Shown piece after piece: positions 1 to 42,744 of a DNA stretch of 64,000 nt; the stretch's first letter is position 1, and each line of letters opens with the position of its first letter. Source of the stretch: Adineta vaga (Eukaryota; Animalia; Rotifera); contig CP075492.1 of NCBI GenBank assembly GCA_021613535.1, forward strand, positions 19,902,001-19,966,000. The letters run 5' to 3'. The translations under genes and the position numbers were made by a program. The notes beneath the pieces are model-generated. The model saw nothing but the letters and a program-made list of their open reading frames with translations, searched no databases and was not told the origin of the DNA.

Positions 1-3000
1 TTCATTCATATTATCAGAACTTTGAACATAAGCAATTAAATGATCATCACCCCATTTCATCACAATACACACAGAAATAGATGATATGTTAAGTAAACAT
101 CGTTCTATTTCACCAAGTTCAATACGTTGTCCATGTAATTTGATTTGATGATCTTTTCTTCCTTGATAATGAAGAAGACCATTACTATCCCTTTTGACGA
201 GATCACCTGTTCGATAATATATTTCACTATCGATTTCAATAAATGCTTTTGATGTCAAATCATCACGTCCAAGATAGCCAGCAAAGACACCAACTCCTCC
301 TACAAACAATTCAGCTTCTTCATTGATCATCACATTTTGCAAGAATTCATCTAGAACTAGAGTTCGATAATTTGCAAGGGGTGCACCTATGGGAATGCTC
401 TGTATATTGGATGATATGTTGATATCATAGAATGTGCAAGCAATAGTTGTTTCCGCTGGTCCGTATAGATTCCATAGAAGACAGTTTTGCAAATTGATGT
501 TTTTGATTGAATCAATCAATTTAATCGTGAAAGGTTCACCTATAAATGAAAAATCAAATGAGTTAAGATGAAGAAATAACTTCATGTCACATGCTCACCA
601 ATACTACAAAGCGATCGAAGATATGCGAAGCCATCAAACATATTACATAGTTTCACAAAAGCGAAAAAACTCTGTAATAAACTCGGTACAGCATGCATAT
701 ATGTGATTTGTTTATTTCGTAAAACTTCATATAAATAATCAAAATCAATTGTTCCTCTTGGATGAAGCATAACTAATGTGGCACCATGGATTAAAATACC
801 AAGTATTTCTTGAACATGAATATCAAATGAACATCGTGCCATTTGTATAGCTATATCGTATTGATTGAATGAATCAATAAAAGTTAAAGAATCGATACAT
901 TTAACGAAATTCTCATGTCGAACTTGAGCCTACAAAGAAGAAGAGTAAAAACAGTTAAATATTTAAAAAAAAGAAGGAAACAATTAACAAACCGCTTTTG
1001 GTATTCCAGTTGAACCACTTGTAAAGATGATGTAAGCTATGTTATGAGATGTCACTCTTATACTTGATAATTCATCAATATCAACATTATTCTCCATATC
1101 ATTGTTAGTTAATATAGAATCCATATTAACTAAGATAATATTATCATTAAACTTCTCTTTAGTCAATGAATGAACAAGAACAAGACGAGATTGAGTTTGT
1201 TCTATGAGAGAATATAATCGATGTTGTGGATCTCGTGCTGATAATGGACAATAAACACTACCAATCATTTCAATGGCCATTATACCAATAACCTATTCAA
1301 GATCAATATTCATTCTCATTCTCATTCTCATTCTCATTCTCATCAACTACTCACCATTGGTATACTTCTCTCGACACATTGACAAATTATTTCACCTACA
1401 CAGATATGATATTCATTGAGTAGATTCGAAGATAACAATTGAACATAATACAAAAGTTCAGAATATGTCAAAGATTGATCATCTAATTCAACAGCTAACT
1501 TTTGTGGATATATCTTTGCTTTCGAAGCAAACTCATGATGAATACAATTAGTAGTAGTCGAAGAAGAAGGAAATGATATTTGTGTTTGATTTAGAGATTG
1601 TATTAGAAATTGTTCATTTGGTAACAGTAATGATAACTCATAGATTGATGTCTCTTTTCTAGTAGTATGAATAGATGTCGATAAATGATGTAACATTGAA
1701 TGAAATTGATGTGAAATCTTTTCAATTGTCTTCACATTGAATAAATCAAGAGATGCATTGATTGTGCATGAGAGTTCATTCATATCTAGATTATGTTGAT
1801 AACTAACGATAAAATCAAATTTACTCATGATTTCATCTTCACTAATCTTAAGTGACAATGGTACTAAAGAAAGTTGACTATCACCAATTCTTATTTCATT
1901 ATTGTTGTTATATGATATGAATTCAAATGATATGTCGAGAAATGCAGGATGTAATATATTAGGATGTTGATCAAGGATACGTTGAAGTGGAAAATATGAA
2001 TATTTCATACTATTTCTTATCATTTCACTAACATAATCGAGTAGTTGACAAAAAGACCAATGAGAATCTAATTGGCATCGTAATGGAATAGCATTTACAA
2101 ACATACCAATCACTGACTTGAGTTCATCTCTATATCGACCATGTGTATTCATTCCAATGCATAGATCATTTTCTCTATTTGTTAATTTAAATAAGAAGAT
2201 GTAGTAGATTGCAAGAGATAGATGTTCGATGGAATGATTGTGTGCGGATGCATAGGAAAGAAGATGACGTGAAAGATCTTGACCAAAATCAAAAGAAATG
2301 AATGTTCCACGACCTGTTCGATGTTCATTTACAAGACGATATCGATCATATGGTAATGATAAAGATTGATCAAGTTTGCAATCATAAAGAGTATCATGCC
2401 AAAACAGATTTGCGCCACTCATCGGCATTTGTCGTTCAATAACAGCATCTAGATGAAAAAGAAAGAATCGATGAATTAAGAAAGAAATAGAGTTTTAGTT
2501 ACAATCAACATAACGTGGAATAGTATCATCGGTGTTAGATAGTTGACTTGTTGTATATGCTTGATTAAGATCATGAAGAAACACATTCATTGATGGAACA
2601 TCAAAAGTAGCATGATGAAAATTGAAAATAATTACATCTTTGTCAGAGAGAAGATCATTTGAAGAGATGTGTTTGTAGTAAATAAGATGACATCGAAAGA
2701 CAAGACCTTGAGCTAGATGAAAAAGTTGAGGATTACGTTTTTCTTCATGTATTATATTAGTGAGTTGTTGATGTGTTTCATAAGTGCTTTGAATAAATGT
2801 AAATAATGTATTGTTATCATTGTTCGAAGTCATGATTTGTTGCATGAATGAGTTTGTTTCTGTATTAAAGACAAGTGATGTACGAAGTGATTCATGTTTT
2901 GTAAGGATTAGTTGAAGAGCATTGTAGAGTTGTTTAATTGATAGAGTATGTGTTGAGGAGAGATGATAAACAAAAGGCATATTGTAGATTGCTACTTGTG

Positions 3001-3066
3001 GTTTCTCAGGATCAAAACGAATTCGTTCATCAAGCCAAATACGAGCTTGTGCAAATGATGCTGGTG
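1..3066 (-). CDS. NRPS cassette 4 (C-A..., cut by the window edge); A-domain code about DIQHCILIAK
   Basis: Five exons visible; near-identical to cassette 1 from about 2450 to 290 and identical to cassette 2 (16148-16430) over about 283-1. Confidence 0.9.
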
Positions 3067-6000
3067 CTACAATGTGTCATATTGTTATTAATGTGTGTGA
3101 ATGAAAAAAAACAATTTTTGTAAATTGCGGAGTATGATTGTGTATTGACTCTTCACGAGGCATTCCTGATGATGCATTTCAAAAAGTGACAGTGAAATTT
3201 TTTTTATATATTCGTAACTGAATAAACTAGCTTGTTTTTAAATGAAGTCTATAAGATTATGTCACTTTGAATGAGATTTGCTCAGTTTGAGAGATATCAG
3301 AAACATAGAATTTGAGTTTGCAATATGTGGTGAATCCATTTCATCACTTCTATTTCGAACTTAAAATGCGACATTGGTACTCAAACGGCTTCTTGTAAAT
3401 GAAGATAAGCATAGACAAAATTATGCCGAATAGAACCATTATTTGTCAGCTACAGTTCTTCACAGTGAGAGTGAAGTTTCGAGATAGAACTCTCATAAAT
3501 TTCTAAAACTATCTTAAATTGACGACATATGTATTTAGAAAGAAACACTACGATGTAAAATTCATTTTCGTCGCTTGGACCATTTCAATTTACTCGTGAA
3601 ACCATATGAGTAAAAATCAAGGGGAGATCAACGTTACTCCAGTACTCCACTATACTCCATTCGTACACGACGAAGAGAAAACAGTCGATATTCGAGTTTT
3701 CCAGAAAATGTTGGAGTACGAGTGAAGTAAGCGGAGTATTAGAGTAGTTGTTTTTCCCCTTGCATTTCGTACATTACTACAGCATCTTATCATTCGGTCA
3801 ATAATGAATTGGCTAAACGTTTCGTTCGTTCATTTAAACAAAGAATGCTACAAAAACAGCATTTAGGACATATGAACGAATCCATTGCTTTACGTAATGT
3901 GTTAAGATCCTTTCGTTAGTGTCCACATACATCTATTGATTCCTCTTCAGCAAATTCATTATTTCGACATTCAATTCGTACAGAATTTAATATTATGAAA
4001 CTAACTCCATCATCACTACCTACATCATTATAACAACCAAAATTCTCTGTTGGTCGATTAGTGTGGACATTGAAATCTTCACACAATCATCGTCCACAAT
4101 GGGGTAATACCTAATTATTAAACCAATTGGTTCAATGTTATACGAAGTTCGATTATGCAATGGTTAATTATGTAAATGTCACCATAATTAGCTTCGTTCT
4201 TCTTATTCTCCTCAATCAGTGCCATCAACTTAATACAGCTTATCAAGTTATTTAGCAGCTTCTGCATCATCAGTAAAAAGAACTTCAATTACTTTGATTA
4301 CTTCTACATCAAGATGATCTCAACGACATCGACATGCTCGTGTTCGTTATTCTCCTTTGTAATTATTTTGGAACACCTTCGTTTCATGCGTGACTAATAG
4401 TCACCGGTTATATTACGGTTATATATCTACATAGTTTTCTCTTCTTCCCTTGTTACTAATTAACATAGAACTCACGTTCATCTCTCAAAAGCACAAATAC
4501 TATAACAAAGTTCCCGATTTAATTCACTCTTCTAGTGAACAAATTCTGATGTGGACTACCTCCCCATAAATCCAGCTGAATTCTATATTCACTGAGGACC
4601 CATAAGAATCGGATTATTCCCTCTTGGGAATATGCATCAACAAGAACAATACGTTTTGAATTAGAGTAGAAACCTACCTTCATCTACGATATTTGATTGT
4701 CGCTGAAATATAACATTCTTAATTTCTTTAGCTTCCTTTGGCAATATAAGATTGAGTTTCGATATAGTTGCCACACAGGTTTCCACTCCATCCACTATTT
4801 CATTTGATGGAAAAAATTGTTCCAAACAAAATGAAAACCTTTCAGCTATATGTGCAACAGTTCCATCATCAAATAAATCAGAAGAACATATCAAATCAAA
4901 TGATAATCTGTTATTTTTTAACGCTGGATTATAAACAAATGTTAACATAAAATCGAATTTAGCTTTTTCATATGATTTTTCTAATGGTACTTGCTCCAAT
5001 TGTGTATCATTCATCGATAAGTAAGTCTCACCTTCTGACAAAGTGACGAAATCGAACATTGTTTCCAGAAAACCAAGATTAGATTGGTTGAGATGGAAGT
5101 CACTGAGAATATGTTGAAGTGGATAATGAGAATGTTCAAGTATTGATAAACATTTCTCTTGTATATATCTAACAACTTCATTGAATGACCAATGATGATC
5201 AAGTTGAATACGATATGGTAATGTTGACACAAACATTCCTATCATATTATACAATTCAGAACGATATCGATTAGCATTTATAGTACCAACACATAAATCA
5301 GTTTCATTATGTGATAATTTGAATAGAAAGACATAAAATATCGAGAGTCCAAGTTGAAAAAGTGTCAGATGATGTGATGAGGCATAATTTAGAAATGGTG
5401 TACATATAGTATCATTTAATATTATTTGAGTTGTAGAAGCTAAACCAGATTGCTGCTGAATTGATGTACGAGATCGATCATATGGTAATGATAATGAATG
5501 TTGAAAATCACATCCTTGTAGTTGAGAATACCAAAATTCATGAGATAATGTCATATCCATAATATGTTCATGAATAGAATAATCAACGTATTGAAATGGA
5601 TTGTCGTCGACAAAAACTAAATTATTGTCTCGATAAGCAAGAGAAAGATCACGAATAAAGATTGATGTTGATGCACCGTCAAAGAAAGCATGATGAATAG
5701 TAAATAATATTAAATCATCTGCAGTCAACATATCACTTTCTTCATTTGAACTATTATGAGAACGAAGAATATGACAATTAATAACATGTCCTTTTGATAG
5801 ATCAAATAAACCATATTTGTTTAAGATTTTCTTTACAATTTCATTCTTGTCCGTGTTTTCTTTGGAAACATTCACTATTGAAAAGCTATTTGTTTCCGTA
5901 TTATTGATTAAAATACTCAGATCTCGACAATCTTGTGCAATAACACCATTTCGATCAAGATAAAGTGCTGTTCGAAGAATCTTGTGTTTTCTTATGACAG

Positions 6001-9000
6001 ATTGATATGCATGTTGTAATCGTGAAATTGATATATGATCAGTTATCGACGATAAACGATATATAAATGGAATAACATACATATTAGTATTGTCATTTGT
6101 CGAAGATGAAAAACGAATGTGTTCATCTAAGAAAATGCGTTCTTGGGCAAAGGATGCTTTAGCTGAAATGAGATATAGAATGTGATTATTGCAGTATTTT
6201 TCAGATTATACTTTTACCTGTAAGGATATTTAATGAATACCAGCAACCGTCATCGTTACTCAATTTGGAATTCAGAATCTCATGAATAAGCTGTGCATGA
6301 CCGATAACAGTTGGGTATTGAAATAGATCACTAATAGCAATGGAATTTACTTCTAATTGAAATTCTATTTTATACTGATGTAGAAGTTGCATAATAACTA
6401 ATGAATGACCACCAATCGTGAATATGTTTGTATTAATAGAGATCTGTTGTTGTTTTAATACGCCACACCATATACGATGGATAATAGATTGAATTTCACT
6501 TGTTGGTTCTAGCAATTCGTTACCGTCATTAAGATTTATTGAAGAGAGAGAAACGAAATCAGGTAAAGGGAGCTGTTTTCGATCTATTTTTCCATTTGGA
6601 TTTAACGGTAACTTTTCAAGAATAATAAAACAAGATGGAATCATATGTGGAGGTAGATGTGATTGACAATGTTCACGTAACTCATTTTCATTTACGATCG
6701 AACTTTGAACATAAGCGACTAAATGATCTTCACCGCATTTGATGACAACGCAAGTAGATATCGATGTGATACTAAGTAAACATCGTTCAATTTCACCGAG
6801 TTCAATTCTTTGTCCGTGTAATTTGATTTGGTGATCTTTTCTTCCTTGGTAATAGAGAAGACCATTATGGTCTATTTTTACGAGATCACCAGTTCGGTAA
6901 AATTTTTCATCATTAATTTGAAGAAGAACTTTGGATGTTAAATCGATACGGTTAAGATAGCCAGCGAATACACCAGCACCACCAATAAATAGTTCACCTT
7001 GTTGGCCGACGAGCGCATATTGAAAATATATATCCAATACTTTATAATACTCGTTAGGGAGTAATCTACCAAGCGCGATAAGTGATTCACGGCGCGCGGA
7101 ATCGATGCAGTGACAGAAGGAAACAACTGTAGTTTCAGCTGGCGCATATATATTATATAAACCACAGTTGTTGTTAATGTGTTTTAATAAGCGATGAACA
7201 AGTTTGTTTGATATAGGTTCTCCTAGAAATCTTATAAGTACATTCAACACTCTTTCTGTAATTTACTTACCACCAAAACACAGTGATCGTAGCGTCAACA
7301 AAGAATCACCATGTGAACGTTCAATAGCTTCACACAAATAATCCAGGAATGTCGGAACAGGTGCGATACATGTGATTTCTTTAGTTTCGCATATATTCAT
7401 AAAATACAAAAAGTCCATGTTCCCATACGGATGTAACAGCACAAGAGCTGAAGACAAAAATAAGCTACCGATGATTTCCATGACATGCACGTCGTACGTA
7501 GGAGCACATATTTGGGCCATAACATCATTCTTCTGCAACACTCCAGTATTTTGTAAACCTTGAATAAAATTTGAGAAATTTCGGTGTGTGGTTTGAACCT
7601 AAAAAAGCAACAAACTGCAAGCGATATAACACAGTGTGTAAAAAGCATACTGCTTTCGGTATGCCAGTCGAACCACTTGTAAAAATAATGTAAGCTATAT
7701 TATTAGATGATACTGTTATCCTTGAAAGTTTCTCTAGCTTGAAATCACCGCTCAAATCTGTATTAGTCACTGTTTCATCAATATCCAATAAGTTCGTAAT
7801 ATGAGGAATTTTTGTGATAGTAGTTCGATGAACAATAACCAGGTGAGACAGTGTTTGTTGTATAAGAGCATGTAAACGGTCTTTTGGATCTCGAGGTGAT
7901 AATGGACAATATACACCACCTACCATTAAAATTCCCATTATGCCAATCACCTAAATTACAGAAAACTTCCTAAGTCGAAATAATACATACTTATTTAAAG
8001 CCACTTACCATTGATATACTTCTTTCGACGCATTGACAAACAATATCACCAACCTTTACACAACATTTATCCAATAAAGTCAAAGACAACACTTGAACAT
8101 AATATAACAGCTCACAATATGTCAACGATTGTTCATCCAGTTCAACAGCTAACTTTTGTGGATATATCATTGCTTTAGAAACAAATTCATGGTGAATACA
8201 ATTGACAGAAGGAAATGATATTTGTGTATTATTCATTGATTGTAGAAGTAATTGTTCATTTGGTAATGTTAGTGAGAATTCATAGAGTGGTTTACTCAAT
8301 TGACTATGAATACAGGTAGATAACTGATGTAACATTGAATGAAACTGTTGTGAAATCTTATTAACGGTTTCCACATGAAACAAATCCATTGATGCATCGA
8401 TTGTATATGATAGTTTATTCAGATCCGAATTATAATGAAAACTAAGAATAAAATCAAATTTACTCATGACTTCATCTTCGCTAATACAAATTGAATATGG
8501 TGCAAGGATGAGCTCATTATCACCTAGCATTATTTTGTTTGCGTCTTCGCTCGTCATAAATGATGTAAAGTCGAATGACGTGTCAAGAAAAGCAGGATTT
8601 GATACATGAGGATGTTGATCAAGAATACGCTGAAGTGGAAAATATGCATATTTCATACTATTTGTGATCAACACTCGCATCTGATCAGTGAATATATGAA
8701 AGGATGAATGAGGATCAAGTTGACATTGTAGAGGAATAGCGTTTACAAACATTCCAATGATAGATCTCAGTTCATCTCGATATCGTCCGTCTGTGTTCAC
8801 TCCAATGCATAAATCTTTTTCTCCATTGGTTAATTTGAATAAGAAAATGAAGTAAGTGATGAGTGCCAAACATTCAAGTGACATGTTACTTGTCGATGCA
8901 TACAAAAGAAAGTCATGTGAAAGATCTTGTCCAAAATCAAAAGAAGTCGAAGTTCCACGACCAGTTCGATGTTCATTTGAAAGACGATATCGATCATATG

Positions 9001-12000
9001 GTAATGGTAGAGATTGATCAAGTTTACTATCATGTAGAGCATCAAGCCAAAACATTTCTGCACCAGTCATTGGTATTTGTTGTTCGATAGCAGCATCTAA
9101 AAGACAACGACGAGTGATATATGAGAAAGAGAAAAGTGAAATAAATGTGTATATTTACAATCAAGGTAACGTAGATTAGTTTCTTCGTTGTTGTCAAGTA
9201 ATTGACCTGTTGTATATGCTTGATTAAGATCATGAACAAATATATTCATTGATGGGAAATCAAATGAAGCATGATGAAAGTTAAAAATGATTACATCCTT
9301 CTCCGAAAGTAGCATTTCGGAAGAGATCTGTTTGTAATAAAGAAGATGACATCGAAAGACGAGACCGTGAGTGAGATTAAAAAGTTGAGAATTTTGTTTC
9401 TCTTCGTCTATGATATTGTTCAATTGTTCTTGAGTTTCATAAGTACTTTCAATAAATGTAAATAATGTCATGTGATTACTGTTATTAACTTGCACAATTC
9501 GTTGCATCAATATATTTTTATCCTTGTCGAAAATGAATGCAGTATGAAGTGAAAGATGTTTGTTGACAGTGAGATTGAGTGCATGTTGAAGTTGTTTTAC
9601 TGATATAGTATTATTTGGAGAAAGATGATAAATGAAAGACATGTTATAGATTGCTGCTTGTGAATTTTTGGGATCGAATCGCATTTGTTCATCGAGCCAA
9701 ATGCGAGCTTGTGCATAGGATGTTGGTGCTATATTAAATGTAGTATATGTGTGTAATAGTAGAAACATCAAGGATGTAAAAGAGACGATGTAGCATTCTA
9801 TCTACTGATAATTTTATTTGTGGCCGTAGGCGGCGTAGCGTATAGGGTTGAAAAGCTTGTGCCCCACTTGAATTTTGCTCCTGTAGGCTCGGTCTCATCT
9901 GAATTACAGCTGTAAAGTTTGATCACAGGGTTGGTTGTTTAGCTGGACAGTTCTATGTTCTCGCAGCATTTAACACTATGCATAGGTTTTTGTGTACTCA
10001 AAAAGTGAGTACACTACTAAAATCGGTCTGTATGTCCGGCCGTTTATCCGATAACTTTCGAAAGGAGAGTCCGATTGAGCTGAAATTTTCTACACAGTTT
10101 AGACTCAGTAATATCTCAGTCGAGTTCGAAGATGAGACCGATCGGTCAAGAATTGCTTGAGTTCTCGTAAAAATACTGAAAACTGGCCAGACCATCACTG
10201 AGGAGGAGTACGGGGATTTGTTGCAAAAATTTTTTTCCGTCATTTTCACAGGATATATCGGTCTGTTGGACTTCATGTGCATTACCTTTGTGTCCTCAAG
10301 TCCTGAGAGTGAATGTGGGTGATATAAGTGATCTGGGTGAAATTTCACCCAGATGGTTTTATGATGGGTAAAATCTCCCAACTTTATATGGTGGTTTCCT
10401 AGGCACGATATAATGTCGAGAACATGTTGGAACCTGAGTTGAAACTATAGATAGGGGTTATTTGAGGGACCTGGGTGAAATTTTACCCAAGTGGTTCCGT
10501 GATAGATAACAGCGTCAAACTTTCCATGGTGCTTTCCTAGGTCTAGAAAAAGATCAACAGAATGTTGGTATACAAGTACGGGGGTAGGGAGGGATGACCT
10601 GGGTGAAATCTCACCCAGGTGGTTTTGTGATAGATAATGTCATCGAACTTTCTACGGTGCTTTCCTAGGTCTAGAAAAAGGTCAAGAGAGTGTTGGCAGA
10701 CGAGCAGGGGGTAACAGGGGTGCAGAATATGGTCGTGTGCGCCGACGCGTGTTGGGGAAAAGTTTAGGCGTTGAAATATTTTTAAATGTAATATTAGCAG
10801 CAATATTTTTTCTGTAGATAAGAAAATAAGTTTTGTATGTAGATTATCTAATTTGTTTACTCATATAGAATTATATAACTGTTTGTCTTTTTGTTTCTTA
10901 TGACAATTAATATGTTCTAGCATAAGCATACATAAACTCTGTGTTTTAATTTGTTTTATTTTTTTCTATCATTTAACCCTTCGTCGTTGTCGTGGGGTCC
11001 AAGCGGACCCACCACTTGTCTATATCTTCTGACAAGACTGCAGTTGACGTTTTGGTTTGCTATTTTTGAATAGTGCATACTAACCCCAGCCCATATAGAA
11101 AGATTGGATTTCCTCTCTGCTGTGCCCAAGTAATTATAAGACTACAACTGAAGGCTCAAAATGAGGACAGCTACGAAGGGTTAAGTAACGATATAAAATA
11201 TCTCGTGCGGTTTATATTGTTGTTATACTTAAAATTTGTTTTCGTTATTTCTAACATGTATAAAAACAATCTAAAGCATGGCGATGTATAAAGATATATA
11301 CAAGAAACAAGACAAAAAGAAAATATTCAGGAGAAAAAAAATGAATATTAAATGCGAAGTCAGGAGAGTGATAAACGTAAATCATAAACTTTGCTTGCCC
11401 TTCTTTTATTCTTTACGTTGTTTATTCAAACTTTCAGTCGTTTAAAGTTCTCTCAGTTATAAAAATTGGAAATGTTTCCAAGTAAAGAACAAGCACCACG
11501 GTGACCAGAATTAGTCGATGATTGATGGAACTGATTGTGTTTTATGATTATCTTATTTTGGGCACAGTAGTTTCTTTTCTTCCTACATTTCTTTTTAAAA
11601 ATATATATTTGAAAACAGAACATTTATTTTTATTTTGATATTGAGAGAAATTTTCAATCAATTTTTCTTCGTTGAGGGAAATTTTTCGTTTTAACGACAA
11701 ATTCTGCAGCCCTAGGGGTAGGGAGAGGTAACCTGAGGAAAATTTCACCAAGGTAGTTGCGTGATAGATAAAGTCATCAAACTTTTCATCGTGCTTTCCT
11801 AGGTCTAGAAAATGGTCAAGAGAGTGTTAGCGTCAGCAGGGTGAGTGTGAAGAATCAGTGAGAGAACGATGCGACATATGATATGAAGAAATAAAGGAAA
11901 GCGTAACTCCATCAGCGCTAAAGCCTCTTCTATCAAAAAACATCACAATGAGGGTCAGCAGGGAGACCTTTTGTGGCTTTCAAGCAAGTATTCTTTGTAT

Positions 12001-15000: not shown

Positions 15001-18000
15001 TCATGAATAGAATAATCAACATATTGAAAGGAATGATCATCATCTATAGGTAATAAATCATCAGTCTGATAGGCAAGAGAAAGATCACGAATAAAGATTA
15101 ATGTAGATGCACCATCAAAAAATGCATGATGAATAGTAAATAATATTAAATCATCTGCATTCAATAAATCATCATCATTGTTAGTTAACAAAGCATCAGA
15201 TCGATAATGGCGAAGAATATGACAATTAATAACATGTCCTTTCGATAGATCAAATAAATCAGATTGATTTAATATTCTTTTCACAATTTCACTCTTTTCA
15301 CTATTCACTTCTTCAAGATTTATCACAATAAAACTACATGATTTCACATTATCAATAAGAACATTTTCATCTAAACAATGTTGTATAATAATACCATTTG
15401 TATCAACATCAAGTGATGTTCGAAGAATATTATGTTTTCTTATGACAGATTCAAATGCATGTTGTAATCGTGCAATCGATATATGATCATTATTAGATGA
15501 AATACTAAAAAGTAATGGAATAACATACATGTTCTGATTATTATTATTGTTGTTGTTCGTAGATGAAAAACGAATTTGTTCATCTAAGAAAATACGTTCT
15601 TGTGCATAGGATGCTTTTGCTATAAACAATAAATTACAAAATATAAAAAAATATAGTTAGAAAATAAGCACTCTATACCTCTAACGAGATGTAATGAAGA
15701 CCAATGATAATTATCGATAGTGAGATTAATATGCATTATATGATGAATTAGTTGAGCATGATTCATGATGGTTGGATGTTGAAATAAATCAGAAATAGAA
15801 AGAGAATTTGTTTCTAAATTAAATTCTATTTTATAACGATGAAATAGTTGCATCATAAGTAATGAATGACCACCAATAGTAAATATATTTGTATTGATTG
15901 AGATTTGTTCGTGTTTGAGTATATCACACCAAATATGATGAATAAGAAGTTCGATTTCATTTGTTGGTTGTGTCAGTTGGATATCATTTGTGAGATGTGT
16001 CGATGGTAGATGAGAAAAGTTAGGTGAAGGAAGAAGTTTCCGATCTATTTTACCATTTGAATTCAATGGTAGTTTGTCAAGTATCATGAATATTGATGGA
16101 ATCATGTGTGATGGTAAATATGATTGACAATGTTGACGTAATTGTGTTTCATTCATATTATCAGAACTTTGAACATAAGCAATTAAATGATCATCACCCC
16201 ATTTCATCACAATACACACAGAAATAGATGATATGTTAAGTAAACATCGTTCTATTTCACCAAGTTCAATACGTTGTCCATGTAATTTGATTTGATGATC
16301 TTTTCTTCCTTGATAATGAAGAAGACCATTACTATCCCTTTTGACGAGATCACCTGTTCGATAATATATTTCACTATCGATTTCAATAAATGCTTTTGAT
16401 GTCAAATCATCACGTCCAAGATAGCCAGCAAACACGCATACTCCTCCGATGTACAGTTCACCTTCTTCGTCAAGAATAGTAACTTGCATGTATATATCCA
16501 AGATAAGACATAAATAGTTTGGCATCGCTAGACCGATTGGTATCACTGTTTTGTTTCCTAATGCAGTAATGGGTTGAAATGTTGAATTGATTGTTTCTGC
16601 TGGCCCATATATGTTCCATGTCAGACATTTTTCTTCGGTATAATTTGTTAATAAGTTACTTAGATCGATAGTAAATGCTTCACCTGGTGAAAGAAAACAA
16701 GTTTGAGAATAGAATAGTCTATTTTAATATTTCTTACCGCTAATACAAAGAGACCTTAAACATAAACTCTGAATCAACTGGGAAGTGTCAATAAAAAAAG
16801 AGAACAAGGCTCGGAACAGACTTGGTACAGCTTGTATACAATTTATCTGTTTTTGTTTTATCACTTTAGTAAAATACTCGAGATCCAATATTCCGTCAGG
16901 ACGAAGCATAACTAATGTTCCACCAATGATTACTGTTCCCATTATTTCTAAAAGATGAACATCAAAAGAGCAGCGTACAGTTTGCGCAACGATGTCATTC
17001 CTATTAACCGCATCGATGGAAACCATTGATTGCATACATTCAAAAATATTTCCATGTCGAATTTGGATCTATCAACAAAAGAAATAACGACATAATGTAA
17101 ACTTATTACCTTCAGTACTAACCGCTTTTGGTGTTCCAGTTGAACCACTTGTAAAGATGATGTAAGCTATGTTATGAGATGTCACTCTTATACTTGATAA
17201 TTCATCAATATCAACATTATTCTCCATATCATTGTTAGTTAATATAGAATCCATATTAACTAAGATAATATTATCATTAAACTTCTCTTTAGTCAATGAA
17301 TGAACAAGAACAAGACGAGATTGAGTTTGTTCTATGAGAGAATATAATCGATGTTGTGGATCTCGTGCTGATAATGGACAATAAACACTACCAATCATTT
17401 CAATGGCCATTATACCAATAACCTATTCAAGATCAATATTCATTCTCATTCTCATTCTCATTCTCATCAACTACTCACCATTGATATACTTCTCTCGACA
17501 CATTGACAAATTATTTCACCTACACAAATATGATATTCATTGAGTAGATTCGAAGATAACAATTGAACATAATACAAAAGTTCAGAATATGTCAAAGATT
17601 GATCATCTAATTCAACAGCTAACTTTTGTGGATATATCTTTGCTTTCGAAGCAAACTCATGATGAATACAATTAGTAGTAGTCGAAGAAGAAGGAAATGA
17701 TATTTGTGTTTGATTTAGAGATTGTATTAGAAATTGTTCATTTGGTAACAGTAATGATAACTCATAGATTGATGTCTCTTTTCTAGTAGTATGAATAGAT
17801 GTCGATAAATGATGTAACATTGAATGAAATTGATGTGAAATCTTTTCAATTGTCTTCACATTGAATAAATCAAGAGATGCATTGATTGTGCATGAGAGTT
17901 CATTCATATCTAGATTATGTTGATAACTAACGATAAAATCAAATTTACTCATGATTTCATCTTCACTAATCTTAAGTGACAATGGTACTAAAGAAAGTTG

Positions 18001-21000
18001 ACTATCACCAATTCTTATTTCATTATTGTTGTTATATGATATGAATTCAAATGATATGTCGAGAAATGCAGGATGTAATATATTAGGATGTTGATCAAGG
18101 ATACGTTGAAGTGGAAAATATGAATATTTCATACTATTTCTTATCATTTCACTAACATAATCGAGTAGTTGACAAAAAGACCAATGAGAATCTAATTGGC
18201 ATCGTAATGGAATAGCATTTACAAACATACCAATCACTGACTTGAGTTCATCTCTATATCGACCATGTGTATTCATTCCAATGCATAGATCATTTTCTCT
18301 ATTTGTTAATTTAAATAAGAAGATGTAGTAGATTGCAAGAGATAGATGTTCGATGGAATGATTGTGTGCGGATGCATAGGAAAGAAGATGACGTGAAAGA
18401 TCTTGACCAAAATCAAAAGAAATGAATGTTCCACGACCTGTTCGATGTTCATTTACAAGACGATATCGATCATATGGTAATGATAAAGATTGATCAAGTT
18501 TGCAATCATAAAGAGTATCATGCCAAAACAGATTTGCGCCACTCATCGGCATTTGTCGTTCAATAACAGCATCTAGATGAAAAAGAAAGAATCGATGAAT
18601 TAAGAAAGAAATAGAGTTTTAGTTACAATCAACATAACGTGGAATAGTATCATCGGTGTTAGATAGTTGACTTGTTGTATATGCTTGATTAAGATCATGA
18701 AGAAACACATTCATTGATGGAACATCAAAAGTAGCATGATGAAAATTGAAAATAATTACATCTTTGTCAGAGAGAAGATCATTTGAAGAGATGTGTTTGT
18801 AGTAAATAAGATGACATCGAAAGACAAGACCTTGAGCTAGATGAAAAAGTTGAGGATTACGTTTTTCTTCATGTATTATATTAGTGAGTTGTTGATGTGT
18901 TTCATAAGTGCTTTGAATAAATGTAAATAATGTATTGTTATCATTGTTCGAAGTCATGATTTGTTGCATGAGTGAATTATTGTCTTTGTGAAAGGTTAAT
19001 GAGGTACGAAGTGATTCATGTTTTGTAAGAAGTAGTTGAAGAGCATCACGAAGATGTGGTACTGATAAGTTATGGTCTGAGTGGAGACGATAAACAAATG
19101 GCATATTGTGAATTGTCGGAAAGGATTGATCTGTATGAAAATATATTTGATTATCATGCCATATCCGATATTGTGCAAAAGATGCTGGTGCTAGAATAAA
19201 GGCAATCATGATTCAGTGTTTTTCAGATAACTAAAGACAACGATCATCAAATGATGTTGGGTATTCGTAGTCTAATTTTTTCCAGTAGGTTGCTTCTCTA
19301 AGTACATAGTAGATTTTTGCATGTTAATACTACACGCTAAATAAAAAAGACGTATTACGAAACCTATCGAAAAGGTTCTGTAAATGTCAAAAGCTTCAGA
19401 ATGCGTTGATAAAGCGAAAGAAATGGTTTTGAAAATGTACGAACTCTTAAAAGGATCTAACCGCGGGTACACGCCCCGAACCATCGTCTACGAAACCTCT
19501 TCAAGTTTCGTACAGGGAAAAAAGGTTTCATATCTGCTCACGAAACCTTATTGCATTCGTATAAAACCACAGTGCTGAACCCCAAGATTTCGCATTTTCT
19601 GACGGAGCCGTTTTTTCGCCGTACAAAACTCAAAATGCTTTCGCAGATGATGGTTCGGAGCGTGTACCCGCGCTCAGATGCTTTTAAGGGTTCGTAGATT
19701 TTGAAAACCATTTCTTTCGATTTGTCAACGCATTCTGAAGCTTTTGACATTTACGGAACCTTTTCGATGGGTTTGGTAATACACCTTTTTTTATTTAGAG
19801 TGTACGTTAACCTTCGTTTTTGTGTACTCAAAACAAGGGGAAAAGGCAGACTTGAAGTACAAAAGTATGTCAAAGTACAAAAGCAGTTCAAAGTATGTAG
19901 AAGTAGTCGAAGTAGCTGAAAGTACTTGAAGTAGCTGAAAGTACGTATAAAGTAGCGTAAAGTACTTAAAAGTGATTCCAGGTACTTATAAAGTAGCTGA
20001 AAATATGCGTAAAGTTCGCAAAAGTACTTCAAAGTCCAAAAGTCTGCCTTTTCCCCCTTGACTTGAAAAGTGAGTACACCTCTAGAAGCGGTCTGTATGT
20101 CTGTCCGTCCGTCCGGTAATTCGATAACTCTGCACAACTACATTCGATCGAGCTGAAATTTTTGTGCGTAGAGTTGTCTCATCAATATCTTAGTCGAGTT
20201 CGAAGATGAGCTTAATCGATTTTTGTCATTGCTGACTTACAGAAAAATTTCCCAATATCTCTATGTATAAAGTAGCCTGTTTCGCTGTCTGTTTGCCTAT
20301 TCGCTACCCATTCATTTTCTCAAAAAGCTAAGGTCACAATGTGGTTGGCATCATCAGGGTGAGTGTAACGAATCAATGAAAAAACGTCACATGCTTATAA
20401 TTATTTGTCCTTACTTTGCACTTTGCCCCTTTTGTCCTTCGGAAGAGTATATAAGTGATCAGAGATCCAAGCAGGTCAGTATTTTATAAACCTCGCCTGC
20501 CTTCGTGTGAAGGCCTGATTATTTTTTATCCCAATAATATAACAACAATAACAGTAACTTTATTGTTCGATTCTGCAGAACTTCTCGAGACTGACTTGAA
20601 TAAATTAGATGATTACACTGAAAACTCTGTGCGATGAAAATGAATGAAGCATCTCGGTATTTACAGTGTAGACTAGCTTGTTTTTTCTTCGTTACCAGGA
20701 TGACATAAGAGTTGAAGTGAAACATGAAAAAGTTGCTTTAGAATTGCTCTTTAGTTATTGATAGTCAAGAAACACTTAGAGTAACTTATAGGAAGCTTGA
20801 ACTAAGAAGTAACTAATCTGCAGAAAAACAAACCGACGAAATTTTAGTATCCATCATTAATAAAATGTTAACATGAAAGAGTGAGGTTTTCAACAGAATA
20901 CCGTATTTTAGATCAAATAAGAACTGCCGTTTACAAGAAAAAGAACAAAGTAGTATAGTAACAACATAGGGATAAATCATATTTCTGGTTTATGAACATT

Positions 21001-24000
21001 CTGGATGAATCTGATAGATAAAAAAGTCTCCTGGCGTATTGTGACCAAGAGACATTCGATCCCCATTAACCACTTAATCTGTGTCAGACAATGCTGCTTC
21101 GTCTGGGTCGAATCAACGTGAAACTGAAAATATTCATCAGCAAGTAATGATGAATCATGAGTTGCCTAGTTCGAATTATAATATAAATGCACATTTAGCT
21201 CAATAATATCACTTCGAAAATAAATGACAAAACTTGAACTAGATTGTTTCTATAAAACAGGAATACTTTTTCTTCTATCTATAATTAATTATAACTCTCG
21301 TAGAGTATATTTCTGCAAAAATAGGAATAGGTAGGAATAGTTTTATTTCAGTTGGTATTCAATACAATACAAAAATATACACATATATATATATCTATTT
21401 ATGAATTTTATTTACTGAAAACAAAAGCTAAATCTTGATCTACCAACAACTATGTCTATAAACGCTTTTACAAAATCATCATTTATATTCGAAGTCGAAT
21501 TAGGCAGCTACTCTGATGAATATGTGAACTCGTGTCGATGAGCTTTCGACAATGATATAAGATTTAAATATATTTAAGTATTTTTTATATTATTTTCAAA
21601 TATCTATCTATTTTGTCACATCTGAATACTACCTTGAAGATGACCTTATCTGCATCTTTTTTACTGATCACATACGAAGAAATAAAGGAAAGCGCTGTTC
21701 CATCAACACTAAATCTTCTTCTATCAAAAATTATCTCAGTGAAAGTCAGCAGAAAGACGTTAGTGACTTTCAGCTAAGACTTCTTTGTATTATTTCACTT
21801 TATCAAAGTAATTTTTTGTGTGTTAATTGGTGAAAAATGTAGAAATTCATTCAAAAGCATGATTTCTCTTAATTTGAAGGCTTCAGATGAACATAATCCA
21901 GCTATCAACAATATGTTATTGAGAACAGATTGAGTACCTGGTACTTTTTCAAGTGTACGGAGAAACGGAGCGCATAACTAGAATCAATTGATGTGTCCGT
22001 CCATCGGTTCGTTTACACGATAACTCCCGAAAGGCTAATCCAATTATGATGAAATTTGCTAGAGTATTGTCACATCAATATCTCGCTCGAGTACGAAGAT
22101 GAGTCGAATTCGACGAGTCATTACTGACTTATTGAAAAAATACTGATGTTTCCCTATATCTTCTATCTCATACATTTTTTGCAGTACACACAATTTTCGG
22201 ATAAAATCCGAAGTTTCCGCATTTATTTCCTGATACAATAAAGTATATACAACACATCGTTAATCTCGCAAAAGGTTTAAGTTTTATAGACAATCTTAAC
22301 TACTTTCTATACTAACAAAGTAAAGTATTCTGGTAAAATAAGGTAACAACACCATAGCTTGCATGTAGAAAAAAGATTCGCGCAAATATTATTGCTTTTC
22401 ATTGTATATTTTTTATTAGTGCATTGTTAGTCTTCATTAAGCCGTCATGGTTGGTTGATTACGTTGTTCGACACGTAAATACAAGGTACTGTGTTCAAAC
22501 CTCAGTATGTTGGACAGAAGACAGTGCAGATGCCACCGTTCGTAAAAAGAAAAAGACGGTAGAACCCGGCTGTATGTGGAAAAAATAAATAATAACCGCG
22601 GCCGGCCCCTTCGGGGATCAACCCTATGGGACGTTATTATTATTATTAGTCCTCATTGCAAAACTGTTTCTGACACGTATCTAATTGCGGCCGAACTCAT
22701 CAAAAACACCATTTAGGGCCTTTGTTTTCTGAACATTTACATTAGCACATACTAATAAACATTCACTATGTACTTTTATATCTGCAACTCCATAAAAATT
22801 CTGTTTTGAAGTTTCATTTAATTGCATCAGAAGATGTACAGAATGTATTACACTTCTGCTACTATACAAAAATTCCACTACATCGTATTTCGGTTTAGCT
22901 AAAACGAAAGTAGAATTTGGAGTAGTGTTTTGTTGAAAATGCACATGATAAACATATTTCGAAGAAGAAAAGTCTTTATGGAAAATAGATTACTAGGTAA
23001 ATTCTACTGTGAAGATCGGAACTCATAACAAAATTATTAGTCTTGAAATCGAAATGATATAAGTTCTGTTAGTGTGAACAGAATGTGCAATCTAAAAAAG
23101 AGGAATTTTACCGAACCTATATCGAGGAGAAGATCCTTTGGCGTTTCGTATCGATTTACTGAACCAAAAAAAGTCATTAGAATGTTCACCAATCTTTTTT
23201 TAGATCAGCAAATCGTACAAAACCTCAAAGGATCTTCCGTTCGATACAGGTTGGGTAAAATTCATCTTTTTTTAGAATATAGTTGTACATAAAAATAAAT
23301 GCTTAAAATACAATATTCTTAAAGTCAATTGGTGAGCATTCTTTCCTTCATACATACATCATATGGTGAACTTATTTACTATAAACCACATCAACATTTA
23401 CTTTTCGATAACTAGAAACATAGAAAACGAAAAATCATACCTTTATTCATGATATTTTTCGATCTATGAAACACTTTTGCTTGTATTTCGTCAACTTCTT
23501 CTGACAGGATAAGACTAAGTTTCGATATAGGTGTGAAACATGTATCCATTCGATCAATCATTTGTCTTGATGAGAACAATTGTTCCAAACAAAATGAAAA
23601 TCTTCGAGTTATACTAACAACTGTTATCTTATCAAACAAATCATTAGAACAAACCAAACTAAATAATAATTTATTGTCTTTCAACGTTGGATTATAAGTA
23701 AATGATAGCATAAAGTCAAATAGAGCTACTCTGCAGGACTCATCCAACGACACGCCTTCTAAATTTATACCGCTTAAACGTAAATGGTTCATATCTTCAA
23801 ACGCGTTAACAAAAAGAAACACTGTTTCAAGAAATGAAGCATTTGATTGATTAACATGTAGATCACTAAGAATATGTTGAAGTGGATAATGAGAATGTTC
23901 AAGTATTGATAAACATTTCTCTTGTACATATGTAACAACTTCATTGAATGACCAATGATGATCAAGTTGAATACGATATGGTAATGTTGACACAAACATT

Positions 24001-27000
24001 CCTATCACATTGATGATTTCACTTCGATATCGATTAGCATTTATACTAGCAATACATATATCATTTTCATGATGAGTTAATTTGAATAGAAAGACATAAA
24101 ATATCGAGAGTCCAAGTTGAAAAAGTGTCAGATGATGTGATGAGGCATAATTTAGAAATGATGTACATATATCATCATCAAAAGTAATTTCAACAGTAGA
24201 AGCTAAGCCTGTTCGTTGATTCGTTGATAAACGAGATCGATCAATTGGTAATAATAATTGATGATCAAGATTATATCCTTTGAGCTCTGATCGCCAGAAG
24301 TGTTGAGATAATGTCATATCCATAATATGTTCATGAATAGAATAATCAACATATTGAAAGGAATGATCATCATCTATAGGTAATAAATCATCAGTCTGAT
24401 AGGCAAGAGAAAGATCACGAATAAAGATTAATGTAGATGCACCATCAAAAAATGCATGATGAATAGTAAATAATATCAAATCATCTGCATTCAATAAATC
24501 ATCATCATTGTTAGTTAACAAAGCATCAGATCGATAATGGCGAAGAATATGACAATTAATAACATGTCCTTTCGATAGATCAAATAAATCAGATTGATTT
24601 AATATTCTTTTCACAATTTCACTCTTTTCACTATTCACTTCTTCAAGATTTATCACAATAAAACTACATGATTTCACATTATCAATAAGAACATTTTCAT
24701 CTAAACAATGTTGTATAATAATACCATTTGTATCAACATCAAGTGATGTTCGAAGAATATTATGTTTTCTTATGACAGATTCAAATGCATGTTGTAATCG
24801 TGCAATCGATATATGATCATTATTAGATGAAATACTAAAAAGTAATGGAATAACATACATGTTCTGATTATTATTATTGTTGTTGTTCGTAGATGAAAAA
24901 CGAATTTGTTCATCTAAGAAAATGCGTTCTTGAGCAAAGGATGCTTTAGCTGAAATGAAAAGTAGAATGTGATTATGAGAATGCTTTTCAAATTATACTA
25001 GTTACCTGTAAGGATATTTAATGAACGCCAAGAATGATCATCTTTACTCAATTCGGTATTGAGAATCTGATGAATTAGTTGAGCATGATTCATGATGGTT
25101 GGATGTTGAAATAAATCAGAAATAGAAAGAGAATTTGTTTCTAAATTAAATTCTATTTTATAACGATGAAATAGTTGCATCATAAGTAATGAATGTCCAC
25201 CAAGAGTAAATATATTTGTATTAATTGAGATTTGCTTTTGTTTGAGTATATCACACCAAATTTGATGAATAAGCAGTTCGATTTCATTTGTTGGTTCTAA
25301 GAATTCGTTAGTGTTGTTAAGTTTAGTAGAAGCAAGAGAAACAGAATCAGGTAATGGAAGAGACTTTCGATCGACTTTTACCATTTGAATTCAATGGTAG
25401 TTTGTCAAGTATCATGAATATTGATGGAATCATATGTGGTGGTAGATGTGATTGGCAATATTCGCGTAATTCGTCTTCATTTACGAGCGAACTTTGAACA
25501 TAAGCAACTAAATGATCTTCACCCCATTTCATAACAATACACACAGATATAGATGATATGTTAAGTAAACATCGTTCGATTTCACCAAGTTCAATTCTTT
25601 GACCATGTAATTTGATTTGATGATCTTTTCTTCCTTGATAATGAAGAAGACCATTACTATCCCTTTTGACGAGATCACCTGTTCGATAATATATTTCACT
25701 ATCGATTTCAATAAATGCTTTTGATGTCAAATCATCACGTCCAAGATAGCCAGCAAAGACACCAACTCCTCCTACAAACAATTCAGCTTCTTCATTGATC
25801 ATCACATTTTGCAAGAATTCATCTAGAACTAGAGTTCGATAATTTGCAAGGGGTGCACCTATGGGAATGCTCTGTATATTGGATGATATGTTGATATCAT
25901 AGAATGTACAGTCAATAGTTGTTTCCGCTGGTCCATATAGATTCCATAGAAGACAGTTTTGCAAATTGATGTTTTTGATTGAATCAATCAATTTAATCGT
26001 GAAAGGTTCACCTATAAATGAAAAATCAAATGAGTTAAGATGAAGAAACAACTAGATGTTATTTGCTCACCACTACTGCAAAGTGATCGAAGATATGCGA
26101 AGCCATCAGACATATTACATAGTTTCACAAAAGCGAAAAAACTCTGTAATAAACTCGGTACAGCATGCATATATGTGATTTGTTTATTTCGTAAAACTTC
26201 ATATAAATAATCAAAATCAATTGTTCCTCTTGGATGAAGCATAACTAATGTGGCACCATGGATTAAAATACCAAGTATTTCTTGAACATGAATATCAAAT
26301 GAACATCGTGCCATTTGTATAGCTATATCGTATTGATTGAATGAATCAATAAAAGTTAAAGAATCGATACATTTAACGAAATTCTCATGTCGAACTTGAG
26401 CCTACAAAGAAGAAGAGTAAAAACAGTTAAATATTTAAAAAAAAGAAGGAAACAATTAACAAACCGCTTTTGGTATTCCAGTTGAACCACTTGTAAAGAT
26501 GATGTAAGCTATGTTATGAGATGTCACTCTTATACTTGATAATTCATCAATATCAACATTATTCTCCATATCATTGTTAGTTAATATAGAATCCATATTA
26601 ACTAAGATAATATTATCATTAAACTTCTCTTTAGTCAATGAATGAACAAGAACAAGACGAGATTGAGTTTGTTCTATGAGAGAATATAATCGATGTTGTG
26701 GATCTCGTGCTGATAATGGACAATAAACACTACCAATCATTTCAATGGCCATTATACCAATAACCTATTCAAGATCAATATTCATTCTCATTCTCATTCT
26801 CATTCTCATCAACTACTCACCATTGATATACTTCTCTCGACACATTGACAAATTATTTCACCTACACAAATATGATATTCATTGAGTAGATTCGAAGATA
26901 ACAATTGAACATAATACAATAGTTCAGAATATGTCAAAGATTGATCATCTAATTCAACAGCTAACTTTTGTGGATATATCTTTGCTTTCGAAGCAAACTC

Positions 27001-31671: not shown

Positions 31672-32558
31672 ATTTTGTGATGAATAAATAGAGAAAAATA
31701 TCTATTTATAATGCAAGAAAACCTATTGTAATCTACAAGTTGTAAAACAAATAGAAAAATTATATATAAATGATAAAATGAGCTAATAACTGAAGTGAGA
31801 TATTGTAAAAACATCAAAAAGATGATTTTGTGGAGACACATGCATTACGAGCACAAATGAAGGATCAATTCTTCTTTTTCGAAATAAAGGACATCGCTAT
31901 ACATAAAACTGATTTTTTTCTTTCATCTTTCTTAAACATGTCATAATTTGCTATTCGCAACGGAACTTTGAGCGACTTGTCAAGACTTCGAGAAACTAAA
32001 TTATATATATTTTTCACAGATATCTATACACATATCATATAACAACATTTCACAAATACATAAGAAAAACAAATGAGACATTATAATATTATATTAAATA
32101 GTAAGAAAAAGAACATGTTATTAATATATCTAATGACTAAATACGAAAAATATTCATAAACAAAAGTATGTTGTGAAACAAATATCATATTATAATAGAT
32201 ACACTTAGAATACAAAATTGGTTAGAATGTTTGTGGTTACTTAAGATAGAATGAAATATCTCTTAAATAATGTATCGTATAAAAAACTTATGTTCTTATG
32301 ACATAAGTCAGTATTTCATCTAATCTTATCAGTTATAAAGTTCGAGTTTTTGAATGTTTAAAGTCTCTGTAAAATGTATAATAAAACATAGTCCTTATCA
32401 GGCCTAAGCTATTTACTTTCGAGTTTTCAAATTTAATATTCTATAAATGTCTCTATAGTGTGATATTTGATAAATGTTAGAGTTAGTATATGAAAACAAA
32501 ATCTCAACTGACCCAATCATTAATGTCTAAAAAGTAATAATTGTTAATGTTTGTGATT

Positions 32559-41268: not shown

Positions 41269-42744
41269 TGTCACTTGTTGAATATCAGTCACACAGGAAA
41301 TACAAAAACTGATGAAAGAAACAGTAAGTTTCGTATCTGAAATGTATAATTGAAATAAACTACTATGGCTTAAACATTATATATCATACGTAAAATCGAA
41401 ATGACAGATGTAGATTGTGTTCATTTATATAGAATAATTTCTCACGTAGGATGATTCGGTACTATTCAATAGCTTCATAAAAATAATTATCAGGCATAAA
41501 TTTTTGTAGTTTTTTACCTTACACAGCTAATCAGAACTAGATGATATATAACAGTAGAGAATCTGAAGATTTTCGTTTGTATACCGTCTAATAAACAGAC
41601 CAGAGGACACGACAAAATCTAATTTAATTTTTCTTTTCTTTATCTATTTTGCCTCATGTTTTAAAATTATTTTCCGTTAATTCCTGAAATATGAATTCGT
41701 CTTTCGTCAACCTTCGCACAGTGTCTCTATTTTTTCACATAAACGATACCATGAGAACTCATTCTTTATCTTTTTTACTCTAGAGATCTATTCAAGAGAT
41801 ATACATTAAGATATCGATCTAGTAGAATGGTTTTCGACTTCTTCTTAATACTAGCATTCTAGTATGACCATTATAGGTAATCACCGAAAAGGAGTCGACT
41901 TTTTGGAAAAGCAAAACTTTTTTTTCCATATAGGGTGATAGACCCACCATATCTTCTATCATCATCATAAATATCAGATCGATTGGTGGTTGTCGCGCAA
42001 TATGAGAGTGGTCAATATATTGACTCAAAAACGACTCACTCAATAATATTTCACATTCTCTTTCTTGTAGAGAACAGTCTTCCAAACATTAATTGTCTGC
42101 TTGCTTGTGTGTCTGCAGAGGTAAAAAAAGAACATCGAAGTCCGATTTTATGGAAAAGTCATTTGTAGATGTATTTCGGTGCAGGGAATCGGAATTTGAG
42201 CGTCATTTGCTCCGATCACTGAAGAGAAGGTGTGAATTGGGAGAACTGACATGAAATAATAAAAAGAGAGTTTTCAGGTTAATCTATTTCTATGGGTGTC
42301 CGAGTATTCTCATTCTAGTAGTAGAGAGTGTGGTAGCCGTGTACTGTAAGCTTTCTTTCGTATATGATTACGGACACTTCACTTATTGGTAAAAGGTTAG
42401 CTCGAGAAGAAACTAATACCGACCGCTCATATGTTTTGATCTGCACGTACTTCTATTTTTCTCGATTGATCAAAGCTTATGTTGGTATTGACACATAAAA
42501 ATCATCTTCATTTCAGGATATTTTGTGTAAATCGCTGAAAAATCGAAAAACACGATTTTTGCATATATCAGAAATTGGGCTCGTGTTTCAACATTTTCGA
42601 TATGAAGACATGATCTGATCGAACTGAAAGTTTTACCTGACTATTTTCATAACTATCTGTAACGTGTAAAAAAATCAGCGAAATCTGATATGTGAAATTT
42701 TCGCGATTATCTAGATTTATCAGAGAAGTACTCTTAAGAATTTT

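Follow-up and report, generated by a model that had tools for sequence, protein, structure and literature searches.

Bacterial nonribosomal peptide synthetases (NRPS) diversify mainly through swaps of the adenylation (A) core (Baunach et al., 2021, PMC8097286), and in the heavily recombining kahalalide synthetases of Ca. Endobryopsis the stretch from motif A3 to motif A6 has been described as a 'specificity unit' (Li et al., 2024, PMC11428043). The elements termed GRINS are repeats of more than 500 bp and more than 80% identity between the modules of one synthase, and have been attributed to gene conversion (2021, PMC8256042). Bdelloid rotifers carry dozens of multimodular NRPS and polyketide synthase (PKS) clusters, some of which respond to fungal attack (Nowell et al., 2024, PMC11258130). 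Here we focus on a ~70-kb PKS-NRPS gene on the minus strand of Adineta vaga contig CP075492.1, which contains eight cassettes of condensation, adenylation, thiolation and condensation domains (C-A-T-C, the two C domains being called C_a and C_b). Its cluster is already catalogued and the pattern is established in bacteria; here, that pattern is seen in an animal gene, in the form of nearly identical modules whose differences are clustered at sites of the substrate pocket. The window, that is, the whole stretch of 64,000 nucleotides that was analyzed, corresponds to C3:19902001-19966000 of the haploid assembly that served for all genome searches (100.8 Mb, six contigs), and positions below are those of the window unless they carry a contig label. 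It contains cassettes 4, 3, 2 and 1, and a further 50 kb upstream of the window, which were added to the analysis, hold four more, named D, C, B and A.

The locus resembles bacterial A-core exchange in several respects: C, the C-A linker, A_sub and T are near-identical and the main differences lie in the A3-A6 core, the core breakpoints vary, and a few residues, as known from the bacterial systems, can flip specificity. It differs in that the A. vaga gene is an animal gene with spliceosomal introns and a subtelomeric position, that the exchange occurs among tandem modules of one gene and not between pathways or species, and that the islands shrink to two codons. As in GRINS, the cassette repeats exceed 500 bp and 80% identity inside one synthase. 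In contrast to GRINS, for which the mean absolute skew must exceed 0.15 for GC as well as for TA, cassette 4 has a GC skew of 0.19 but a TA skew of 0.08 (300-nt windows, 23400-28499), and the A. vaga repeats span NRPS modules almost entirely, whereas GRINS cover parts of PKS modules. There is also a parallel to Stachelhaus code engineering of PheA-type domains, since the differences hit code positions 301 and 331 of a near-identical domain, although the A. vaga variants are natural and known from sequence alone. A term search of the main text of the bdelloid catalogue (Nowell et al., 2024, PMC11258130) found neither 'gene conversion' nor 'specificity', found 'adenylation' in the methods only, and revealed no account of homogenized modules or pocket islands.

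The evidence is clearest in cassettes 1 and 4. In a self-comparison, positions 17-3072 and 25489-28538 of the window are 97.2% identical over 3,063 bp, and within this alignment lies a tract of still higher identity, whose features are as follows.

138..2734, minus strand: near-identical tract, cassette 1 side (22 substitutions in 2,591 aligned columns)
25610..28200, minus strand: near-identical tract, cassette 4 side (22 substitutions in 2,591 aligned columns)
577..637, minus strand: patch 1 in cassette 1, with F (TTT) at 637, codon 301 as ATT (Ile) at 600-602, and the 5' half of the 59-bp intron 540-598
26049..26109, minus strand: patch 1 in cassette 4, with S (TCT) at 26109, codon 301 as AGT (Ser) at 26072-26074, and the 5' half of the intron 26012-26070
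436..463, minus strand: patch 2 in cassette 1, with codon 331 as GCT (Ala) at 439-441 and linked silent changes at 436 and 463
25908..25935, minus strand: patch 2 in cassette 4, with codon 331 as GAC (Asp) at 25911-25913
26402..26464 (cassette 1: 930-992), minus strand: 63-bp intron after motif A3, identical in both twins

Besides the substitutions, the tract contains a single 6-bp indel, located within an intronic (ATGAGA)n run. Patch 1 comprises 10 substitutions in 61 bp, four of them exonic (S/F, two silent, S/I) and six at intron positions 8-22, the intronic ones being specific to cassette 4. Patch 2 comprises four substitutions in 28 bp, namely a silent change, the two-base exchange GAC/GCT (D/A) and another silent change. 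Together, 14 of the 22 substitutions fall in 202 bp of the adenylation core (binomial P 5e-11), and a scan statistic for clustering gives P < 1e-5, the observed value being reached in 0 of 100,000 permutations. At the protein level the tract holds six differences. Two are in the C domain (R/Q and P/Q) and one, S/P, is found early in the A domain; the S/F pair belongs to a loop lying 12 residues ahead of position 301, and the last two are positions 301 and 331 themselves. That two of these six are code positions has a hypergeometric P of about 0.002.

The clustering of pocket-site differences between near-identical modules is therefore confirmed. The original prediction, which had been made from the window, was right that cassettes 1 and 4 are essentially identical including the 63-bp intron, and that the differences in the A core gather in two patches instead of being evenly spread. 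It went too far in stating that the twins differ almost only at pocket residues, and it had interchanged the two cassettes: cassette 4 carries the S/D state (...CSSG, ...TTIDC) and cassette 1 the I/A state (...CSIG, ...TTIAC). The twin relation stops at about 25610 (138 in cassette 1).

The specificity code of PheA comprises positions 235-331 and K517, and the domain changes its specificity upon point mutation at 278 or 301. Exon 5 of cassette 4 aligns with GrsA-PheA (1AMU) from query residue 21 to 214, equivalent to chain residues 318-519, with K212 at K517; this range, together with the ungapped N.YGP.E-type motif, places L25, I33 and D34 at 322, 330 and 331. Since the alignments of exon 4 with PDB sequences end short of residues 299-301, position 301 was assigned from the position of the G-E turn and from profile continuity. 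It corresponds to the final complete codon of exon 4, right before the split glycine of the turn, and the Pfam profile continues gap-free across the intron (exon 4 reaches profile position 272 plus 20 residues, and exon 5 begins at 295). The usual G is found at 301 in cassettes 2 and C and in many paralogs. The mapping of 301 in the cassettes thus appears sound, and the ten-residue codes read as follows.

Cassette 4: DIQHCSLIDK
Cassette 3: DVLQCSINSK (331 uncertain, one-codon deletion)
Cassette 2: DVMACGIVVK
Cassette 1: DIQHCILIAK
Cassette D: DIQHCILIAK
Cassette C: DIQSLGMITK
Cassette B: DIQHCSLIDK
Cassette A: DIQHCILIAK

We know of no characterized member of the DIQH scaffold. The Ser code is DVWHLSLIDK (PMC10634486), and in a comparison of codes alone cassettes 4 and B are identical to it at seven of ten positions, including H278, S301 and D331.

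Beyond the twins, the whole array is affected. In a block-by-block comparison, identity among seven of the eight cassettes is 99-100% in C_a, in the N-terminal portion of A and in A after motif A6, whereas T, C_b and the spacer that separates C_b from the next C_a reach 99-100% in only four to five of these seven. The identity extends to introns, silent sites and the 461-bp spacer. Cassette 2, which is 74-79% identical to the others throughout, was used as the unhomogenized reference. The A core is the only strongly variable block among the seven, with 42-97% identity inside it versus 99-100% outside, and near-identical flanks give way in abrupt steps to A-core islands of 40-45% divergence. 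The largest is the following.

16433..17133, minus strand: island of cassette 3, 701 bp, from motif A3 to motif A6, two introns inside, zero differences from cassette 1 on either side

This diverged segment matches the bounds of the A-core exchange unit, running from A3 to A6 with C-A linker, A_sub and T kept. Cassette C has an island of 451 bp that ends at codon 331, again with zero differences on either side, and in the remaining five homogenized cassettes (4, 1, D, B and A) the core differs only by small patches of tens of bases. A perfect tandem period of 5.55 kb runs through cassettes D, C and B. Cassette 4 is a mosaic, in which the start of C_a, a 28-bp patch (28201-28228) and the A_sub-T segment differ from the family; the latter (25100-25610) is only 58-88% like the other homogenized cassettes, and 12 of its 16 cassette 4-specific states are shared with the unhomogenized cassette 2.

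The distribution of variants within the family points to frequent exchange. Among 22 informative sites, 112 of 231 pairs fail the four-gamete test, and the Hudson-Kaplan minimum is seven exchanges overall, six of them within 450 bp of core. The states at 301 and 331 split the five cassettes alike (4 and B versus 1, D and A), while the intervening sites split them otherwise. Changes in the core amount to roughly nine replacements and seven silent changes, plus those in introns.

The pocket states are also found outside the array. The same residues were extracted from 20 paralogous A cores at other loci (L006-L025; contigs 1, 2, 3, 5 and 6), which yielded S301/D331 in three paralogs (L009, L010, L022) and I301/A331 in two (L011, L012), these being 70-76% diverged and located on other chromosomes; the other combinations seen at 301/331 were S/G, I/G, G/A, G/D and G/S. 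As both states occur in diverged paralogs, they pre-date the homogenization of the array. In the haploid genome, no donor was found for the island of cassette 3 or C, the best matches being 68-78% for DNA and 62% for protein, and neither donor nor recipient of a given conversion tract was identified by DNA and protein searches of this assembly. The island of cassette 3 has its best genome match at 68-70% DNA identity, and exon 4 of this cassette shows 62% protein identity to the contig 5 cluster versus 45% to its own neighbors, so that the core of cassette 3 is of another A-domain lineage. Two A-domain exons, C5:10204057-10204383 and C5:10258591-10258917, are its nearest relatives. The closest database proteins come from Adineta steineri, A. 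ricciae and Rotaria (61-76% identity); the homologue search returned no independent copy of the cassettes, only bdelloid relatives at 76% identity or less, and look-ups of the exact products of the patch-bearing open reading frames of cassettes 1 and 4 gave no match.

Further expectations from the first reading of the window were in agreement with these results. The two patches do map to PheA positions 301 and 331, the latter by the 1AMU alignment range and the former by the G-E turn and profile continuity; the codes that had been read by eye, DIQHCSLIDK and DIQHCILIAK, were reproduced exactly, the exchanged labels apart; and the proposed homogenization of modules by recombination gains support from the seven cassettes, whose identity includes introns and spacer and breaks off in sharp jumps into islands. 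The comparison across paralogous loci that it had suggested found the two states in the five paralogs named above.

In all paralogs with a readable exon end, a phase-1 intron lies right after codon 301, and therefore this intron pre-dates the spread of the A-domain family. The genome contains more than 100 homologues of exon 4, with open frames of about 111-129 residues.

Supplementary Data 9 of the catalogue (Nowell et al., 2024, PMC11258130) lists the locus as Av20 Chrom_3 region3.8 (Chrom_3:19853598-19938546, minus strand), with an NRPS_term domain and '2 frameshifts, 1 stop codon', and the positions it gives for NRPS regions agree with the hits obtained here on contigs 2 and 3. The cluster is subtelomeric, about 390 kb from the chromosome end. 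Its parts are given here with the evidence on which each was placed.

30091..41376, minus strand: PKS loading part, KS-AT-DH-ER-KR-ACP, then the first C domain (Pfam)
23441..28532, minus strand: cassette 4, C_a-A-T-C_b (frames, splice sites, Pfam)
27969-28532, 26821-27914, 26465-26764, 26071-26401, 25006-26011, 23441-24949, minus strand: exons of cassette 4 (frames, GT-AG sites, phases)
14111..19190, minus strand: cassette 3, C_a-A-T-C_b (matches the family outside its own island)
4664..9800 (9800 approximate), minus strand: cassette 2, the sole unhomogenized module (74-79% identity to other cassettes)
1..3066, minus strand: cassette 1, C_a and A to about motif A8, the gene continuing past the window start through T and C_b (frames, GT-AG, phases; Pfam Condensation and AMP-binding on the equivalent cassette 4 exons)
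2503-3066, 1355-2448, 993-1292, 599-929, 1-539 (runs off the window), minus strand: exons of cassette 1 (frames, GT-AG sites, phases)
19191..23440, minus strand: spacer between cassettes 4 and 3 (in-frame G/GT...AG/C ends)
28533-30090, about 9801-14110, 3067-4663, minus strand: other spacers (in-frame G/GT...AG/C ends)
C3:19873071-19875920 (L003:1071-3920), minus strand: last module, in which A-T continues into a membrane-spanning domain with hexapeptide repeats, of the Pls/PosA 'NRPS_term' type (TIGR02353, E 6e-30)
25375, minus strand: one additional A, within an A-run that directly follows the K517 codon of cassette 4, causing a frameshift with a stop nine codons on

The terminal module of the gene is without thioesterase or reductase. 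The identity of the A domains as NRPS adenylation domains (ANL superfamily) follows from an exon-by-exon search (AMP-binding, PF00501, on three exons; AMP-binding_C, PF13193, on the last); many NRPS structures match, with E values down to 6e-65, and motifs A3, A4 (FD...E), A5 (N.YGP.E) and the A10 lysine are present in the exon translations. Each cassette has six exons in the same layout, with GT-AG introns of 54, 56-62, 63, 59 and ~56 bp; splice sites and phases are conserved, and the exons are open in full for six cassettes. The intron between the C_a/A exon 2 and A exon 3 (26765-26820; 1293-1354) contains an (ATGAGA)n microsatellite, in which cassettes 1 and D differ from the others by one unit.

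The basic spacer of 461 bp is 100% identical in D/C and C/B and has elsewhere grown to 1.5-4.3 kb by insertions; remnants of A or T domains were sought in the spacers and none were found. All spacers have G/GT...AG/C ends in one phase, and their removal by splicing would therefore preserve a single reading frame. The resulting tandem-C layout is unusual, with T, a full C_b with intact HHxxxDG, the spacer and a full C_a, and no A-T between them (C_b at 23441-24949, 14111-15619 and 4664-6205). That C_b might be an E domain was set aside, as a C1-type motif and the standard HHxxxDG are present, and an arrangement of separate single-module genes was judged less likely, given that no start codon precedes the C1 motif of C_a and that all junctions are in-frame GT-AG. 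The large spacers have repeats in common (11881-12437 versus 21672-22228, 87% over 560 bp) and contain short internal repeats (10468-10713 and 11715-11841), presumably inserted mobile DNA in both cases.

Read evidence was taken from short Logan contigs. In three independent DNA studies, cassette contigs are covered 2.8-4.3 times as deeply as the unique contig 30088-31200, and both letters at 26109 are present. One contig of run X16 precisely lacks 27915-27968, and hence the first intron of cassette 4 is spliced; this spliced contig also shows transcription of the cassette family. The RNA-like run has the letters of other cassettes, not those of cassette 4, at very low coverage. In addition to the extra A in cassette 4, cassette C has lost one A from an AAA in C_a (about C3:19891548), which shifts the frame. 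These two indels match the 'two frameshifts' of the catalogue, in which some defects of this kind are suspected by the authors to reflect problems of assembly (PMC11258130).

The pattern in A. vaga is real, clean and statistically strong, and recombination that spares the pocket-coding core is well supported. We consider it probable that tandem cassettes were homogenized by conversion which spared the pocket core, so that old islands survived. In this process, repeated unequal exchange and gene conversion among the tandem cassettes would have homogenized seven of them, including introns and spacer, with conversion tracts ending before the pocket-lining part of the adenylation core. Older divergence would then survive as islands, of 701 bp in cassette 3, 451 bp in cassette C and tens of bases in the other five, and two old pocket states would have been dealt out, S301/D331 to cassettes 4 and B and I301/A331 to 1, D and A, while short-tract exchange may have reshuffled the markers around the pocket sites. 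The patches contain silent and intronic differences and a two-base codon change, and both states occur in old paralogs; they would therefore represent retained or re-dealt old sequence, not fresh mutations. Selection on the structure of the product may maintain the islands, which is plausible, and the S/D and I/A states may load different amino acids, a prediction drawn from the codes.

Several points weigh against this reading. The association of 301 and 331 across five cassettes has a chance probability of about 0.1 and is only suggestive, and the ratio of replacement to silent changes in the core is unremarkable and looks like old divergence, not like a burst of adaptive substitutions. The Logan contigs break at every variant, which leaves them without phasing to individual cassettes, and where repeats are 99% identical, the polishing of a long-read assembly could have introduced or removed part of the small-scale mosaic. 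The homopolymer frameshifts of cassettes 4 and C, should they prove real, would leave both modules broken. Finally, that the spacers are spliced out to yield one polypeptide is suggested only by the conserved in-frame GT-AG junctions.

A neutral explanation, which we hold to be rather unlikely, is that conversion stalls by heteroduplex rejection at dense mismatches, the islands simply being the regions that were most diverged beforehand. Such a mismatch barrier agrees with the silent and intron differences that the islands hold besides replacements, with the abruptness of the steps from flank to island, and with the observation that no other part is as diverged as the core, even in comparison with the unhomogenized cassette 2. 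The smallest patches, however, comprise only 4-10 mismatches in 28-61 bp, a weak obstacle, and have been crossed at least six times, yet the 301/331 pairs stay linked, and both pocket states are kept in distant paralogs as well. It is because the patches are small yet plainly crossed that selection is favored over the barrier.

The perfect 5.55-kb period of cassettes D, C and B and their identical 461-bp spacers could also stem from a recent tandem amplification of one cassette by unequal crossing-over, followed by inward swaps of cores from other A domains. The core of cassette 3, which is nearer to the contig 5 cluster than to its neighbors, would fit such an import, as would the coincidence of the island ends with the known A3-A6 exchange unit (PMC11428043, PMC8097286). 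We nevertheless give this sequence of events little credence: no candidate donor in the haploid assembly exceeds 78% identity at the DNA level or 62% at the protein level, which would make any import either old or derived from a copy that was lost or left unassembled, and the cassette 2-like ancestral states in several segments of cassette 4 fit partial homogenization better.

It is improbable that the array is a decaying pseudogene, with real frameshifts, a synthetase that is no longer made and a pattern that is only a fossil. The frameshifts in cassettes 4 (25375) and C, the stop codon of the catalogue and the very low RNA-like coverage would be in line with decay; against this, apart from these defects the frame stays open over more than 16,000 codons and no splice site or phase is disrupted, one contig comes from a spliced transcript, and the catalogue reports substantial transcription of several 'defective' clusters (PMC11258130). 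Very improbable is an assembly or polishing artefact, in which collapse, expansion or mis-polishing of a subtelomeric repeat would have produced the near-identity or the single-base mosaic, as the catalogue's warning that such clusters are hard to assemble, its listing of two frameshifts and a stop codon (PMC11258130), the position of both frameshifts in A-runs and the unphased, broken Logan contigs might suggest, but which is countered by the raised cassette depth in three independent short-read studies with both letters at 26109, by large islands that are unique sequence within the repeats and not the product of an artefact, by the same pocket states in unique paralogs, and by the distance of 160 bp between the 301 and 331 sites, which lies inside one read pair.

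Homogenization that spared the pocket core thus remains our preferred explanation, and it bears on the biology of bdelloids, the one animal group with so many NRPS and PKS clusters, and on how such genes may diversify without sex. The locus shows a bacterial mode of diversification, with a homogenized scaffold and a pocket core that is spared or exchanged, inside an intron-bearing animal gene, and it supplies natural A-domain pairs in which only two code positions differ, unusually clean material on how specificity is set. Beyond this, it is possible, if still tentative and less likely than not, that S301/D331 and I301/A331 represent a co-adapted two-residue specificity switch on an otherwise identical scaffold, its two residues being kept together and redistributed among the modules of one horizontally acquired synthetase by very short conversion tracts. 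If this is true, the switch would be a built-in means to vary the sequence of a defensive lipopeptide in an asexual animal, and would also provide a natural minimal design for the re-programming of A domains.

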